Source: Adineta vaga (taxonomy: Eukaryota > Animalia > Rotifera). From it: a DNA stretch of 64,000 bases. Below the pieces are notes generated by a model. The model searched no databases, was not told where the DNA came from, and saw only the letters and a list, made by a program, of their open reading frames with translations. The position numbers were made by a program, and so were the translations under genes. The DNA is taken from assembly GCA_021613535.1 (NCBI GenBank), contig CP075496.1, forward strand, positions 5,642,001 to 5,706,000, in the 5' to 3' direction. Positions 36,022-45,637 of this stretch are shown here, in pieces; the first letter of the stretch is position 1; each line of letters starts with the position of its first letter.

Positions 36022-39000
36022 ATGACTCTATTATTCGACAATACGAACTATGGTGCAGCAATCAACATCTCATCAGATGGTCTTAGTGCACGACGAACAA
36101 ATGGATTTGCTAATGGCATTGTTTTTACTAATCGTTCAATAAATATCTTTGAGAAAATCACATTCGAATTACAACAACAACAACCATCGCCAATCTGGCA
36201 AGGTTCATTACGTATAGGTTTATATATAGATCAACAAATACCTCTCGGTGATTTACCATTATCTACGATGGAAGCAAATTTAAGTTCATCCTATAAAATG
36301 ATTTCTTTGGAGAAATATGAAAATCTATATAATGAAATGCGTGTTACCGTTTGGTTAACACAAAATAATTCTTTAAATTATGCAATTAATAATGTTTTAC
36401 GTGGAACATTAATTGAAAATCTAACATTCGATGAAAATAATAATAATGAACTTCTTCCACCTCGATTAATTTTTGATCTATATGGTAACACAACTAGAGT
36501 TCAATTGATTCGAGATGGTAAAATCAATGAAAATTATGTCTTCTAATCGTGTTGCATTGTTTTTCTATTGTAATATAGGTGATATAGTTCCATATGAAAT
36601 TAAAGCTCGAGGACTTGATGCTATACGACACTTTCAGACAGCATGTGATACGGGTACAACATTGGTTCGTCGAACTTTGCTTTTATTGATTGGACCTAAA
36701 TTATGTGGAAAAAGTTCTCTAAAACAAATTCTTGTATCTAATCATGATTCAAATGACAAGTAAAACACATCAAATTTCCTTTTCTCTCATTGTTTTCTGT
36801 GCTTTTTCTTTTTTGCCATCCTTTAGTGATAATTTATCTTCGGATCTTTCATCCTCTTGTTCGATTAATATTGATCAAACACATACATGGTCATTATCAA
36901 AAGCGAATTATAATCATCATCATCATCATCATCATCGACAATCAACTCATGATTCATTAAAAACAATGATTCAAGATTTTGGTAGATATACAAATATTAA
37001 AAAATGATGATTTTATTTTTTAATTAATTTAGATGAAAATGAGTCATCAAAATCAATTACTCAACAACGTGAATATGAATCTCAATTAGTTCATAATATA
37101 ATTCTAAATTTATTAAAACGACGTTATGAATTACATACCGTTCATGAAAAGAAAGATAGAGTTTGTTGAATTACACTTTTTTTCTGAAAACAAAATATAA
37201 TTAATATGTATCTTTGTATAGAATTGGAAAGAAACTTTATTAGATGACTTGAAATTAGTTTATCCAAGTCCGATGGTTCCTTTATCAATCCGTTCATTAG
37301 TCGAAAAACAATTAGCACAAACGAAATCGATAGATCCACATGCTGTACTGACAAATTTAATGTCTACTACAGGAAAAGCGAAAGAAGACAAACCACAAGA
37401 GTATGAACGTCTGCGTCTTGATCTTTGGGACATGCCAGGATCAACATCATCATGTGGAATAACACATCAAGTTTGATTAAATGAAAATCTTTTTCTTTTT
37501 TTGGTTTATTTCATTTCTTAATAGATCTTTTTATCATCACGAGCAATTTACTTACTCGTATTTGACTTAACAAAAGACCTTGATCAACCCTGTGAATGGA
37601 ATAAGGTAATTACTTTCAACATATGAAATTCAAATCTTGATTTAATAATCTTTGGGTAAAAACTAAAAATAACTGAGAAAATGCCAGTCAAGGTTATATA
37701 TCGAGATAGTAGAAGTCTTTTTCTATTCGCTTCATTTGTATATTATCTAGTGAAACGTGAAATAACTCTTTTACCTTTGGTAATTCTAAATGACAGATGT
37801 ATTTTCGTTTTTGTATTTAGGAAATAACGAACCTCGATCATTTAAGTTATATAATGCATTCTATTTACTGTTATTCGGCAAGTATTAATCAAGGACGAAC
37901 AAATGATGAAGAAGTAGATATTCCTCGTTTATCACCACCAATTCTTCTTGTTGGTACACATCGAAATTTATTACCAAACTCAACTAAAAAAGCAATGGTT
38001 AGTTTCTCTAATACTTTCCTTACGAAACAAGAAAAAAATTCCTTGATATTTTATAGATTGAAAACAAAATGGCTACAATTCGTGCAATGATCGCTACAAA
38101 ACCCTATTTTAAACATGTCATTGAGCCATATTTTACCATCGATACACTTCGACCCGATGCTGCTGATATTGAACAAGTAATAGAAAACAAAATGACTTCA
38201 TCAATAATCACATTTCTACTTTCAGATTGATCATTTGAAACAAACTATTGAAGAACTTGCTTTAGCTGAACCTTATATTTGTGAACAAATTCCAACACGA
38301 TGGCTTCATTTTGAAAATGATCTTAATCGATTGAAAAAACAACAAGATAATTTCTATGCTTCACTCGATCAAGTAAATCATATTTATTTCGATGAAATTT
38401 TCCTAAACTATTTTTCTTTTCTTTTTCTTTTTTTGTAGGTTTGTGAAATTGCTCGTACGCAAGATATTTGCTCTTCCGATGAATTAAAAACTTTGTTAGA
38501 TTTTTATCATGATCTTGGCGTGATTGTTTATTTTGGTAATACACAAGATATGTTTCTAAAAAATACACTTATCCTTCGTCCACAAAAACTTATTCAACTT
38601 ATCAAACGTCTTGTTTGTAATAATAATAGTGAGAACGAAAATGATGATGGAATTATTGATGAACGAACATTTGAAAATCTTTGTCAACCATTTATTGAGC
38701 AAAAACAAAGTTTATTAGCATTATTAAAAAAATTTGATCTTCTTTGCGAATTCACACCATCGACATCATCATCGACAGCGGCGACAACCTCTTGTAAACA
38801 ATACTATGTACCTGGTTGTATTCGAAGAGTTTATAATGAAAAAATTCCAATAGAAAAAGACGAACAATCCGTGATGTTTTACTATTTATTTGATAGATAT
38901 TTTCCAGGTAAATTTTAAATTGATGTGCATTTGTATTTCATATAAAAGTAATTTTTTTGTTTATAGAAAGTCTTTTCCATCAAATACTTGTTCGAACAAT

Positions 39001-40989
39001 TAAATGGACACAATTAAATCATGTTTCAACACCAAAACTCTATTATCGTCGTGGAAAATTTATTCTAGATGATCAACATTTACTGATTTTAACTGCATCT
39101 ACAATGAAATATTCACGAATGAAAGTACAAATTATTCGTACGAATCCAAATACAATGACAAATAACAGTACAACAACTCCAAATATAACTACTATTGCAA
39201 GTAATAGTACTAAGAATCAAGATGAAGTTAATCCTCAATTAGCTGATCCTGTTATTGTAGCAAAAGTAAGTTTTCTTTTTTGATTCTTGCAAAGAGTTTT
39301 CATTGAATTCTAATTTAGGTTCGAAAATTTCTTGAATCATTGTTAAATGATATTAAATCCACATGGATACGTCGTCTAGCATTTCAATGTATGGTTATAT
39401 GTCCGTGTGGAAAAATTTGTGATTTACATAAAACTCCTTATTGTTCAAATAATATATGTCTACATTTTTTGAATCTTGATCATTGTCTTTCAAATCCAGT
39501 AAGTTCTCGTTTGTTTTTATTTCAATTATCTTTTCTTCATTATTTTACCAAATATGTTTTTAAAAGATTGTTGAATGTTCATTTCGTCGTGTACCAACAA
39601 ATCAATATCGAAATTGGTTTCCGAAATTAACCACAACACGTGCTGTACCAGTTATTGATATATTGTACGATCAAAAATCAATGAATCATTTTTTTGAAGA
39701 TTCAAATCTTCCCGGTTGGATACGTTCAACTGCAAAACTTCTTTCGACAGCAGTTGTTAATATAAATCTTAATAAGTCTTCGAGTGAAAATCGTACATGG
39801 GTTATTTTAGCAAAGAAACTTGGTTACCAACAATCTGTTATCGATCAATTTGCTCTTAGTCGAAATCCAAGTTTACAATTAATTACTGACTGGATTGTTC
39901 GAAGTGGTAATTCATCATTAGCTGTTGACATGTTACTTGCAACAATGAAACAAATTGGACGTGATGATTTGGTGGATATTATATCACGAGAACGAGAAGC
40001 ACAAAATTCTCTACCATCAGTTTTTATTAGTTATCAATGGGATATACAAGAGGAAGTAAAAGAATTACGAAGTTTTTTAGAATTGGTTGGTTTTACTTGC
40101 TGGATGGATATGGGACAAATTGGTGGTGGAGAACTTTTATATGAAAAAATTGATCATGGAATACGAAATGCTAAAGTAAAATATAAGAAACTATTTTAAT
40201 AAGATTTTGTAATACAATGATTTGTCTCGATTAGGTCATTATATCTTGTATAACACCAATGTATATTGTTTCAAATATGTGTCGACGTGAATTGATTCTC
40301 GCTGATATGTTGAAAAAACCGATTGTACCAGTGATGTTTGAATTAACACCATGGCCACCATTGGGCGCAGCAAGTTTAATCCTTACACAATTAGCTTATG
40401 TCGATTTGAAAGGTAAAATTGCTTTTTGTTTTCTCTTATCATTGATATCATTTGAATTCATTTAATTCTATCAGGTGCTGGTGGACATGGTGGTAGTGGT
40501 AAAGCTGCTGATTTACAAGCACGTTATAATGAAATTGCATCCATGGTATCTCGACATACAACATCATCATCGCCGAGCACATTTCGTCGATTAGTACATT
40601 CATCTTCACTTGATAAACGTGGTACTAGTCATCCTTCATCTAATTTAGCAGCATTGACTACTGCACGACATACGAAACAAACACGAAATCATCAACGTCG
40701 TAATACGACTTCACTCAATTCAAATGAAAGTTCGAATAGTAGTATGAGTGAAGATGAATATGACTATGATTATAATGAAACTGATGGTAGTGATCAGCAT
40801 GCTCGGCCAATTGAGCCCATATTAACTGCATCTAATATTGGTCCACCTGTTGCTGCATCTCTAAATCAACCATTTCAAATTCGTAGTTCTGTTCATTTAG
40901 AACATCGTCTTGGTCCAATGACAAATAATTATTCTCCACCAAATGTTAACAATTCTGTTGCTAGTTGTGCTGTTTGTAGCATTCTGTGA
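36022..40989 (+). CDS. Roco-family protein: Neuralized(NHR)-Roc GTPase-COR-Cys-rich-Death-TIR, ending in a CaaX box
   Basis: NHR (YGAAINISSDGLSARRTNGFANGIVFTNR...WQGSLRIG), P-loop GPKLCGKSS, G3 LWDMPG, IFLSSRAIYLLVFDL, G4 LVGTHRN, COR (EQIPTRWLHFE; FYHDLGVIVYF; ILRPQKL), death domain (WVILAKKLGY...LITDW...IGRDDLVDII), TIR (VFISYQWD...CWMDMGQIGGG...CRRELILA...PIVPV), terminal CAVCSIL*. Confidence 0.9.
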
Positions 40990-41740
40990 TGAATTTATTT
41001 TATTCTGTTGTTGTTTATTCGAAAAATATTTATATTGTGTTCAATGATGCTGAAAATGATGAATTTTTGAATAAAGAACAGAGATTAATAAAACATCTTT
41101 GAGTATCTAATGGAATAAGATGACATTTTCCTTTTACTAATTATCTTTCCTTTTTCTTTTTTTATCAAAATTGCTGACAAAAACATGTTTCCTATCATTT
41201 ATAGAATCTCACTAATTAAGTTTCAAAGAATATTCTCGTCATTGAATGATTTTACTTCTGACGTCAAAGAATATTTTTGTAAACCATCAACTCATTATGA
41301 TGTCGTTTTATTTCATCCGAATGATTATAGCTAACGGGACGAATCAAAACAAAATGAGATTAATAGATTAGACGTTGACATGATTCAAATCGCAATGTAT
41401 TAATGAAAAAAGATAGAATTTCCACAGATGCGTGGTATATGATAAGAATAGAAATAAATAGGAAACGACCTCGAAAAAAGCATCTTTAATGAAATATATC
41501 TTGTTACATTCGATGCTCTTTTGAATCATACACATGTATTCAATGAAACTTAATTTTCCTAAGAATCAGATTTCAAGCAAATAATATACTTTTGTATGAA
41601 TGAGTCAGAAAGCTCGTGACACCTATTGTTGTTGTTGTTGTTTTTCTTTTCTTTTATAATGTTAATGTACGTAACAGTGTTGCACAACAACGTTGCAATA
41701 TCATCATATCATCTTTATTTTGTATTTATTTCTCATCAAC

Positions 41741-42820
41741 ATGATGCAAATAGTAGGTGCATCAGACAAACTACCGGATATTGGAGATGATTTCTATCAT
41801 GATGATAATCAATCGACTTTATCCTTTTCAACTCAAGAACAAATATTAAGTGAAGATTTACCGCCATTGGAAATTGTTCGTGAAATGATTAAATATGAAA
41901 CAACTTTACGTTTATCAGAACCCATTCAAGATCTTTTTGATCTATATCATCAAGATGATAAAGCTATAACGTAAGTTTGTACTGACTATATAAATAAGAA
42001 ATTCTCTCTTTTGACAATCAATAGAATGGTGCTGGACTTCGTACAAAAACATGTTGTAGAACATTTTGGTTATAAACATGTCAATGCTTTACGTACAGCT
42101 GTCTCGCGTTTTCCTGATGATCCAGTGATTAAAGAAGCTTTCTATAGTAACTAGAAAAGTAACTACTAGTCAAAATATAACGAAATAAATTTTATATTTT
42201 AGTCAAACATAATAAGATAACTCAAGGTCTTGTCAATCAAGGTCAATGTGTACAAGATGTCAATTTATTTACTGTAGATGGACAACCAACTACGCTTTTC
42301 TCTCAAATTAGTCCTGGTCAACCCTTAGTTCTCTTGGCCGGTTCAACTACATGACCTCCATTTCTGGCGGCTGTCGAGCGAATAAAGTAATCTATTGACT
42401 TCTTGCTTTCTTTTATTTAACTACATAGTTAATTATTTATTAAGTGCATTATTCCGCTCACATTCGCCAGTTATGCGTCTTTTGACAATTTATATTGCCG
42501 AGGCGCATGCACGTGATCAATGGCCAGCTGGAAAAATTATTTCATGTCATGATCAACCAAAAACATTAGAACAACGTTTGACAAATGCTCGAAACTTTCA
42601 AAAAAAATATAAATTCGAAATGCCAATGCTTGTAGATAGTATAGATAATACATTTCACACAACATATGGATCATGGCCATTTCGTTTCTATGTAATTAAC
42701 GATGGAAAATTAGTATATAAAGCTGAACCAGGTGAAACAACCTATGCTTATGAAATGGATGAATTAGATCAATGGATCGAGAACTTCTATCGAGAAAAAG
42801 GAATTGAACAAAAATCTTAA
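41741..42820 (+). CDS. Iodothyronine-deiodinase-like selenoprotein (Sec at TGA 42352-42354); exons 41741-41970, 42025-42146, 42203-42386, 42445-42820
   Basis: Spliced frame reads ...PGQPLVLLAGSTT-U-PPFLAAVERINALF...TIYIAEAHARDQWP...QPKTLEQRL...LVDSIDN...YGSWPFRFYVI, matching deiodinase PLVxxxGSxTUPPF, YIxEAHxxDxW and YGAxPxR motifs. Confidence 0.92.
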
Positions 42821-42907
42821 GCAAGAAAGAAAAAGCAAATGTCAGTTTTATTCGTAATTAATGTAACATTATCTAAATTCATTTTGTGTTTTGTTTCTTA
42901 ATGTTTC

Positions 42908-43010
42908 GAAATTTGTTTCAGAGATATCTATGATTATTGTGTAACGAAAAAACACTACGAGTGTTTGTACACAATTTGAGAAACGATTTATTATTCTCTC
43001 GAACAGATTC
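42908..43010 (+). promoter_or_regulatory. Type II SECIS element
   Basis: ATGAT at 42930; helix II ATTGTGTA/TACACAAT; unpaired AAA 12 nt from the core; apical mini-stem AAACAC-TACGA-GTGTTT; 3' core TGAG at 42977-42980; lower helix ATTTGTTTCAGAGA/TCTCTCGAACAGAT; ~110 nt after the stop codon. Confidence 0.9.
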
Positions 43011-45637
43011 AAATCAATAGAATATCAAGAATCAAATATAAATATGAATTTAGTAGATGTTAAGATATTTTATGTTATATTTCGTTGAATTTGATTTGAA
43101 TTGAAGTCTTATGTTAGACAGGAAAGAAAAACTTCATATTTATCTGTATTCTATCTTGAATCAAGTTTTTCCATTCTTGCTAATATTTATCCATTAATCT
43201 GCTCACATTATTAACCTGTTGCATGTGAAGGATGTTCTCTAATCGTTAATTCTTGTCCAGATTGTCTTTATTTACATATCATGTACGATATGTTTGCCAT
43301 TTCTAATATTAACAATGACATGCATAGAATAACAATGATAGAAATAATAAGAGTACACTCAGATTGTCTATCCATAATATTAGATAAGGCTAGAGAAATA
43401 AAGACGGCAAAAAAATCTCGAAGAGTACTGTCGAAAAAGAATTTGCAATGAATCAAATCAATCAGGTTCATTAAACGATAAAATGTGCATATTTCATAAA
43501 TAGATTCTCTTACGATCTGATAAGAACAACTTTTTCAAGCAGTGCATGTTAAGCAATACAAATGATATTAGTCTGCATATATTATCAATCCATCAGCTGA
43601 TGAACATACTCTGTCTCTCTCTCTCTCAAATTAACGAACAGAACCGATCTCAAGAAGATCATGTCAGTGTGTAGATAACATTGTCGACTCGATGAGAAAT
43701 TCTGTCAATATATCTATTCTATAAAAACGATTTATTTTTCTGGTAATCGTATGTATATCATAAAGATGTTTGATTATAAGATATCCTTATATAACTGAAT
43801 ATGTCAATATAATCTTTCAAAATTGACATTTTTCTAATAATAATCAGATTAGATTTTTCTCTGCTCTCTTGTCGTATTTTGTGAATATTATATTGTTTTA
43901 GTTGTTATTGAAGTGTTCAATACTTCAATAGAATAATGATCAGTTGAACAAAAGAGAAAGGATTTCATTAGAATGAGTTTTCTATTGATTCTCTAGACAA
44001 TCTGATTTTTAATAATATATTTAATATCGTTTGCTTTCAATGAAAAGTTTATTGAAGTAATTCGATATGATTCAATCGTGTTCGAAAAAGTAGAATTGAC
44101 AAGATAAGCTTTTTCTTTCTTCATTTTGTACATGTGATAAAGACATTTTATTTCATGTTAGATCATCACTCAACATTTGTTCATACGAACCAGTTATAAC
44201 TTTTTGACTCGACACAAATATGGACTTTTTTCTTCTTCTTCTTTTGTCTATTCCATCAATTAGTTATCGTGCACAAAAGTCCACAACTTATTCAATTGAT
44301 CAATTCATAGTTCTTTTAATCATATTAGTACAATTGAGACCAGAACGGAACCATCTTTAATGCTCTATATCTCCTCCTACTTTTTCATTCATTCACTTCC
44401 TTACACAATTTTCTGCCCTTCGATGTCTTACTGATCATTATTGATTGAATGGAAAAAGGTCAAAATCACAACTGAGTTCCGCATTCTTTCTCTCTCTTCT
44501 GCACTATATTAATCACTATCTTACATACATACATATATACATACATACGTATATATATATATATATGTGTGTGTGTATTTCAGGTATCGTACACTATGCT
44601 GTCCTACTTCACTGATGATTACATAAGAGAAAAAAAACCCTGCTCGACGAAGAAAAAGACCAGAAGAATAAAAATAAACAACATATACATGTGCAGCAGG
44701 ATCGTTTCATTCATTTTTTTCTCCATTCTGAAGAAACAAGTGAAAAAAGGATCAAAATATCGTGTATATCGCGGGAAATTCAAGGCCATTTATACAATAT
44801 CAATAACGATTGAGACACTCGTCAATTACACACAGAACGAAAAGTAGGAAGTCAAAAGCAAGTTTTGAGATATTCTAATTAACAAAACATGAAGACATGC
44901 GTCAGTTTCAAGTTAACTACATCGAAAAACAATATCCTGTGTATGTATTTATGTTATTTTGTCATTATTTATTCACTGACAAAACTAATAATTGTTAGTG
45001 TCAATGTAATGACAGTAACAAAAAAAGAATTTCAAAGAATCATTGTTCTTTTCATTCGGCTTGCTTTCTTTTTTTCTCTCTTTCTCGTTTTTTTTTCTTC
45101 ATCCTCATCTTCGTCTTCGTCATCTCATCGAGAGCAAAATGAGCCGCTCAATTTTCGACTAGTTTCATCGGAAGGAAATTTCAAAGGCGCAACGATAACA
45201 TAAAAATCAAATTCTCTTTTGTAGTGCAACCAGCTATCAAATTTCTCGTTCGGATTTTTCTTTGACATTAATCGATAGGAAAAAAAGTACTCTGTTAGTC
45301 GGTCACAGAGATGAATGAATCCAGCTTGTTTCTCTATTTTATTGTATCGATCCTGTTTTTAATCGGAATCCATTAAACCTCTCTCCTGTCCCTCTCTCCG
45401 ATTCGTCAGAGAAAGGCTTCTTGAATGAAAAGAGGCACCTCCAACCGAGTTATACTATTTAGATTCTGCCTTTTTTGCAGCGAAAATAATCAGAATTATA
45501 TAAAATCCGATTTTTTCAATACGATGAGTGGGAGAAACATTACAATCACATAAGGTCAATATAAACGCCTAGTAAAAAATTTTTATGTTTCATTTTAGAT
45601 TAATATAATATGATTATCTAACTATTGTCTAACATCG

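Follow-up and report, generated by a model that had tools for sequence, protein, structure and literature searches.

Vertebrate iodothyronine deiodinases are membrane-anchored dimers (PMC8143656). The residues conserved in all deiodinases, namely Ser/Thr before the selenocysteine (Sec), a Tyr-x-x-Glu-x-His motif, and the following Trp, are listed in PMC11592359, where the roles of a relay His and of a substrate-carboxylate clamp in the vertebrate enzymes are also described. Sec-containing deiodinase-like (DI) genes form multi-copy, clustered families of 11 genes in Trichoplax, 4 in Lottia, 12 in Capitella, and 9 in amphioxus (PMC3473315), and they are also found in molluscs (scallop and oyster cDNAs), annelids, sponges, and sea anemones (PMC8143656). 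No report of deiodinase-like genes, or of selenoproteins generally, in bdelloid rotifers was found in a literature search. The locus described here lies in a stretch of 64,000 nucleotides of the bdelloid Adineta vaga (assembly GCA_021613535.1, contig CP075496.1, positions 5,642,001 to 5,706,000), hereafter referred to as the window. Positions 41741-42820 of its forward strand constitute one four-exon gene, the reading frame of which is unbroken if the TGA at 42352-54 is read through. The identity of the gene as a deiodinase-family member and the predicted recoding of this UGA as Sec, dependent on a Sec insertion sequence (SECIS) element, are considered highly probable.

Gene Structure, Family Membership, and Conservation of the TGA

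The feature coordinates are listed in Table 1. The TGA is the sole interruption of the frame, and the exon 3 motif around it reads AGSTT*PPFLAAVERI. All three introns are of the GT..AG type. Contigs from four public runs were aligned to window positions 41500-43300, and spliced contigs were obtained in three runs from three studies (X1, X6, and X7); they remove exactly the three modelled introns. A single contig of 1219 nt (X1) spans 41709-43095 with the introns out, the TGA unaltered, and the complete SECIS hairpin included. It weighs against this evidence that the runs were only guessed to be RNA; that the contigs lack the introns and show canonical joints in three studies argues that they are. 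Since the spliced contigs retain the TGA unchanged, the codon is neither spliced out nor edited. The two open reading frame fragments at 41693 and 42395, which the initial annotation had joined into one four-exon gene, are thus confirmed by the spliced contigs as parts of a real, expressed gene for a deiodinase-family protein in A. vaga. The transcript contigs depart from the assembly by T>C changes at three sites, 41772, 41896, and 42697 (the last in three runs), which are probably allelic or strain variants; by frame, those at 41896 and 42697 are synonymous, and that at 41772 gives Leu->Pro in the unconserved N-terminus. A short (TGT)n/T-rich tract is located at 41628-41645, just 5' of the transcript start.

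The window gene was compared exon by exon, and single exons were used as queries in Pfam and database searches. Exon 4 alone matched the Pfam family T4_deiodinase (PF00837) with an E-value of 9e-16 and 58.3 bits (cut-off 27), and no PF00837 match was obtained for exons 1-3 searched alone. The nearest solved structures to exon 4 by sequence were mouse Dio3 (4TR3, E 1e-9) and mouse Dio2 (9H48, E 4e-5). These matches agree with the deiodinase-like gene predicted from the letters of the sequence. A HMMER search of 1.84 billion representatives returned 1679 relatives, mostly fragments of 100-130 residues, the pattern left when the gene models of a family are truncated at the UGA. The window exons map colinearly onto the few full-length relatives, which match PF00837 positions 72-235 with E-values of 1e-24 to 1e-30 and additionally score on AhpC-TSA and Redoxin. 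Exons 1 and 2 cover a conserved N-terminal region with the motifs E-N/T-x-L-R-L-S and Q-x-x-V-x-E-x-F-G-[FY]..D-P.

The A. vaga genome holds nine deiodinase-like loci, including the window gene, which are 24-67% identical. The TGA occurs at the same site in all nine, as well as in A. steineri, Didymodactylos, and Rotaria. The five closest A. vaga paralogs constitute a separate subfamily, characterised by four exons and a helical N-domain. The syntenic ortholog in A. steineri (locus L038) encodes AGSTT*PPFLAAVERIK with TGA and is also provided with a SECIS element. A gene for a Neuralized-Roc-COR-Death-TIR protein is situated upstream in both species (window 36022-40989 and A. steineri L038:1-991), and this common neighbour indicates that the gene order is conserved between the two Adineta species. 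Over the ten codons of exon 3 past the TGA, the two orthologs show four synonymous and no nonsynonymous differences, and the ratio of nonsynonymous to synonymous substitution rates (dN/dS) in exon 4 is 0.33. Purifying selection therefore continues past the TGA, which argues that the sequence beyond it is translated. The initial annotation had located the TGA exactly where the catalytic residue falls, flanked on either side by conserved sequence, and had named a lack of TGA conservation or its removal by splicing as observations that would speak against a selenoprotein; the paralogs, the other bdelloids, the selection pattern, and the spliced contigs all bear out the former and show neither of the latter. 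Two near-identical Sec-deiodinase paralogs, C3:4161527-4162191 (+) and C3:4181661-4182291 (-), lie inverted about 20 kb apart, an arrangement suggestive of a palindrome or an inverted duplication of recent date.

In public databases, models of these genes are split, truncated, or deprived of an exon. The A. steineri syntenic locus is annotated as two models of 161 and 111 amino acids. The A. vaga entries I4U23_015281 and I4U23_024609 are encoded exactly in two of the paralog loci (L009 and L010) and are stored as C-terminal fragments of 113 and 126 amino acids. A Rotaria socialis model of 295 amino acids skips the Sec exon, and a Trichoplax model named 'Type I iodothyronine deiodinase' is likewise without it. 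All 94 close database relatives have lengths of 93-177 amino acids, within a search restricted to 68-217 amino acids, and no model of the window's own locus was among the relatives found in that range. The label 'Iodothyronine deiodinase' is already attached to several relatives in UniRef, so the family is recognised automatically and the Sec codon is not. The expectation that automated annotation would split or truncate the gene was thus realised in the A. steineri, A. vaga paralog, and Rotaria socialis models. Deiodinase-domain relatives were also noticed in the fungi Rhizophagus irregularis and Gonapodya sp. (P0192 and P0236). In the Rhizophagus models, the deiodinase domain is fused to ubiquitin repeats (726 amino acids), perhaps because gene prediction joined separate genes over a further UGA.

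The public models in effect treat the UGA as a terminator, as do the 161 + 111 amino acid pair of A. steineri and the C-terminal A. vaga entries. Under such an explanation, translation would end after 167 residues, the two halves would be made as separate proteins, or the locus would be a pseudogene. This is very improbable: the stop would sever the thioredoxin fold in the middle of the active-site loop, both halves are on one transcript, the codon is always TGA and never TAA or TAG in the nine paralogs and the other three bdelloid taxa, and purifying selection persists downstream. The silence of Rfam on the SECIS element, which also favours termination, and the further evidence against it are considered in the next section, together with the preferred reading of Sec recoding.

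SECIS Element and Selenocysteine Machinery

A type II SECIS element was identified in the 3' untranslated region (UTR) by sequence reading, folding, covariation, and a covariance model. The same type of hairpin follows the stop codon in nine of nine paralogs, 60-130 nt downstream. In the alignment of the nine elements, ATGA, one A of the AA motif, and GA are invariant. Compensatory changes were found in 9 of the 11 helix pairs, and 82% of the cells were paired; with a slid partner, 35-50% of the cells were paired, and none of 500 shuffles matched the observed values. Alignment A2 had a register-breaking gap and was excluded from the pair counts. A covariance model (R1) was built from the nine A. 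vaga elements. It detected the held-out elements of A. steineri (39.4 bits), Rotaria (36.4 bits), and Didymodactylos (30 bits), and across the 64-kb window it returned the window element only (45.8 bits; runner-up 17.4 bits). Genome-wide, R1 returned only its nine training elements, with 150 of ~246,000 candidates scored, a result uninformative on further selenoprotein genes. The crude SECIS pattern scan served to locate candidates only; it gave many false positives, counted U.U pairs as mismatches, and missed the window element. The anatomy of the hairpin, its covariation, and the detection of held-out elements with R1 uphold the complete type II SECIS that had been proposed for the 3' UTR.

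Two results weigh against the element. Its hairpin folding energy is by itself unexceptional (z = -1.2), and the Rfam SECIS models (E <= 10) gave no match either in the 3' UTR of the window gene or in the eight paralog loci. Because all eight other paralog elements were likewise missed, the silence of Rfam reflects its models and not the sequence; given the covariation and the held-out detection, these models are read as insensitive to such AT-rich elements. Taken alone, the anatomy of the hairpin is weak evidence for the predicted SECIS; the comparative sequence evidence argues strongly for it. A co-varying element after every copy also speaks against termination at the UGA.

The A. vaga genome (100.8 Mb in six contigs) was searched for the components of the Sec machinery, a check proposed in the initial annotation, and tRNA-Sec, SepSecS, SPS2, eEFSec, and SBP2 were all found. 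The tRNA-Sec, on which ARAGORN concurs, has the anticodon TCA and a score of 66.7 bits, and SepSecS was detected with 300 bits. SPS2/SelD is present in two copies, C6:5391560-5392538 (-) and C3:10490262-10491202 (+). Both carry an in-frame TGA at DLKG*GCKVPR and are therefore selenoprotein genes themselves. The eEFSec gene on C6 is multi-exon and includes the eukaryote-specific domains PF21208 and PF21131 (human eEFSec, PDB 5IZK, E 3e-31). SBP2 matched human SECISBP2 in 7ZJW_B with an E-value of 4e-47. The top matches of the probe TIGR00475 (bacterial SelB), an EF-Tu-like frame, eEF1A-like genes, and a LepA/GUF1-like gene, were rejected as eEFSec; the true eEFSec is the weaker multi-exon match on C6, which was confirmed separately. 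The rejected EF-Tu-like frame, C3:15663895-15664704 (+), is the best SelB match. Its P-loop region (..GQQGHGKSTL..) is atypical and a TAG lies within the frame, for which a pseudogene, an intron artefact, or foreign ancestry of the gene may be the explanation. The presence of tRNA-Sec, SepSecS, eEFSec, and SBP2, and of an SPS2 that itself uses TGA, further opposes termination.

If the UGA were read through without selenium, whether by near-cognate insertion of Trp or Cys or under a variant genetic code, the enzyme would carry one of these two residues in place of Sec. Among the full-length homologs, the Sec position is occupied by Cys in P0226 and by W in P0098 and P0168; the W residues are the points in favour of such read-through, and they most likely arose because the gene callers applied to short contigs read TGA as Trp. 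The explanation is hardly credible here, as TGA is nowhere else a sense codon in the gene, a dedicated tRNA-Sec is maintained by the genome along with SepSecS, eEFSec, and SBP2, the conserved SECIS would be without a role, and Trp is unable to replace the catalytic nucleophile. In the preferred mechanism of Sec recoding, the UGA (42352-54), which stays in the mature mRNA, would be recoded through the 3' UTR SECIS (42915-84); with SBP2 bound, this hairpin would recruit eEFSec carrying Sec-tRNA(Sec). The predicted product is a soluble PF00837 protein of ~303 residues with a peroxiredoxin-like thioredoxin fold and Sec at the catalytic residue 168.

Table 1. Features of the deiodinase-like gene and its predicted SECIS element (window coordinates; X1, X5, X6, and X7 are the runs that supplied transcript contigs).
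Feature	Position	Strand	Remarks
5' UTR	41709..41740	+	Lower bound: the longest transcript contig (X1) begins at 41709; first ATG at 41741
Exon 1, coding part	41741..41970	+	Acidic, weakly conserved N-terminus, then onset of the conserved helical N-domain (PPLEIVREMIKYETTLRLSEPIQ...)
Intron 1, GT..AG, 54 nt	41971..42024	+	Joint 41970>42025 in X1, X6, X7
Exon 2	42025..42146	+	Latter half of the conserved helical N-domain
Intron 2, GT..AG, 56 nt	42147..42202	+	Joint 42146>42203 in X1, X6, X7
Exon 3	42203..42386	+	Start of the deiodinase/peroxiredoxin-like fold and active-site loop AGSTT-U-PPF
In-frame TGA, predicted Sec codon	42352..42354	+	Residue 168 of the 303-residue product (exon arithmetic)
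Intron 3, GT..AG, 58 nt	42387..42444	+	Joint 42386>42445 in X1, X6, X7
Exon 4, coding part	42445..42820	+	Remainder of the deiodinase domain, including IYIAEAHARDQW; stop TAA 42818-20
3' UTR	42821..43136	+	Contig ends at 43095 (X1) and 43136 (X5); furthest transcript extent seen
Type II SECIS	42915..42984	+	Sequence reading, fold, covariation, covariance model
SECIS helix 1	42915-19 with 42980-84	+	Five-pair lower helix
SECIS ATGA core	42930-33	+	110 nt beyond the stop codon
SECIS U.U pairs	42934-35 with 42976-77	+	Two pairs
SECIS helix 2	42936-43 with 42968-75	+	Perfect 8 bp
SECIS A-run	42947-52	+	
SECIS mini-stem	42951-56 with 42960-65	+	6 bp
SECIS TGAG	42977-80	+	GA of the quartet at 42978-79

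Active Site and Possible Function

The deiodinase active-site residues are kept in the GSTT*PPF loop of exon 3 and in IYIAEAHARDQW of exon 4. Residue numbers of mouse Dio3 were mapped from the chain alignment with His202 as an anchor. The equivalents of Ser, Thr, Sec, Tyr, Glu, His202, and Trp207 are all present, so that the residues listed for all deiodinases in PMC11592359 are mostly found in the window protein. The loop-D insertion has the same length as in the vertebrate deiodinases. The selenolate in the G-S-T-T-U-P-P-F loop is presumed to drive a deiodinase-type reduction that depends on Sec: the selenium would attack a small aromatic substrate at a halogen or some other electrophile, and thiols would then resolve the Se-X intermediate. 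The AlphaFold model of the homolog P0098 (predicted local distance difference test score, pLDDT, 86) consists of four N-terminal helices followed by the catalytic fold. Its top Foldseek matches were Dio2 (E 1.5e-14; template modeling score, TM, 0.80) and Dio3 (E 3e-13), with generic thioredoxin-fold proteins at ~1e-8.

Several observations count against deiodinase chemistry in the window protein. The structural match rests on P0098 as a proxy, ~49% identical over exon 4, and not on the window protein. The relay His (Dio3 His219/Dio2 His182) aligns with Pro in D-Q-P-K-T-L-E-Q-R. The carboxylate clamp (Dio3 Arg275/Dio2 Lys241) aligns with Pro in K-A-E-P-G-E, with a gap in the loop alignment that makes the exact register uncertain. 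Dio3 Cys239 aligns with Met and Cys168 with Thr. A membrane anchor is lacking, the Kyte-Doolittle maximum over 19 residues being 0.72 in any exon, and the transcript contig shows no additional upstream exon that could encode one. The reductive dehalogenation or thyroid-hormone-like chemistry suggested in the initial annotation remains conjectural, in view of the missing anchor and of the Pro residues at the relay and clamp positions. True iodothyronine or iodophenol deiodination by the window enzyme can be put forward only tentatively and leans towards the doubtful.

The gene and its Sec recoding might instead serve another redox task, to which a divergent subfamily would have been recruited, for example, as a peroxiredoxin-like peroxidase or a thiol-selenol oxidoreductase, or with a non-thyronine substrate. 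A different Sec-dependent redox role of this kind is a real possibility that falls somewhat short of an even chance. The peroxiredoxin-like deiodinase fold and the scores of the full-length homologs on AhpC-TSA and Redoxin are in its favour, as are the replacement by Pro of both the relay His and the carboxylate clamp (roles: PMC11592359) and the lack of an anchor combined with a conserved four-helix N-domain not found in the vertebrate enzymes. Relatives also occur in fungi (Rhizophagus and Gonapodya), which are without thyroid signalling. Such a role is countered by the retained Ser, Thr, Sec, Tyr, Glu, His202, and Trp207 equivalents and the equal-length loop-D insertion, by Dio2 and Dio3 being the top sequence and structure matches, well above peroxiredoxins and ResA-type proteins, and by no resolving Cys being evident for a peroxiredoxin cycle.

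One paralog, L016 (C5:4270339-4270773, - strand), is the most vertebrate-like of the nine and ~25% identical to the window gene. It carries FGSCT*PPF and EAHASDGW, and it alone among the paralogs keeps the relay His. Its Y-Q-G-Q-N-G-P-T-G-Y resembles the vertebrate Y-Q-G-G-R-G-P-D-G-Y. Judged from these motifs, L016 may be the A. vaga ortholog of the canonical deiodinases. Being much more canonical, this gene at 4.27 Mb on C5 could hold the classical role, which also favours a non-dehalogenase function of the window enzyme. A further, rather unlikely proposal is that a soluble deiodinase-fold subfamily of the bdelloids' own acts on non-thyroid-hormone substrates and leaves the canonical role to L016. 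If this were true, the subfamily, with a helical N-domain in place of an anchor, Pro in that of the relay His, and no carboxylate clamp, would have been expanded and retained for that activity. Halogenated or oxidised small molecules of another kind would be an example of such substrates, perhaps with a link to the oxidative and desiccation stress biology of these animals.

Comparison with Known Deiodinase Systems

The UGA/SECIS recoding and the invertebrate deiodinase-like families are already well documented, and the locus introduces no new principle. Database entries can be corrected for no fewer than nine genes of A. vaga and for the orthologs in Adineta, Rotaria, and Didymodactylos assemblies, all stored as fragments of 110-160 amino acids or as models skipping the Sec exon. 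Together with tRNA-Sec, SepSecS, SPS2, eEFSec, and SBP2, these genes suggest, at the level of genome sequence, that bdelloid rotifers use Sec. The known spread of deiodinase-like selenoproteins is extended to Rotifera.

The window protein has the domain family and the fold in common with vertebrate Dio1, Dio2, and Dio3 (PF00837; 4TR3 and 9H48). Further shared features are Sec in a G-S-x-T-U-P-P-F loop, with the UGA predicted to be recoded through a 3' UTR SECIS, the Y-I-x-E-A-H-x-x-D-x-W motif with the Tyr, Glu, His202, and Trp207 equivalents, and the loop-D length. Unlike the vertebrate enzymes, it has a conserved helical domain of ~80 residues in place of the N-terminal transmembrane helix and shows the replacements His219->Pro, Arg275/Lys241->Pro, Cys239->Met, and Cys168->Thr, with an identity of ~25-30%. 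Like the non-chordate DI families, the A. vaga set is multi-copy, combines UGA with SECIS, and is regularly mis-annotated. Each of the other eight A. vaga paralogs resembles the window gene in the placement of the TGA and in the type II SECIS beyond its stop codon. The four exons and helical N-domain of the five closest paralogs set these apart from the non-chordate DI families. Only two aspects are mildly unusual: the protein is soluble and carries a conserved helical N-domain, and its relay and clamp residues are altered. Compared with the membrane-anchored vertebrate deiodinases, the window protein offers a membrane-free natural variant for asking what role such enzymes have in thyroid-less animals.

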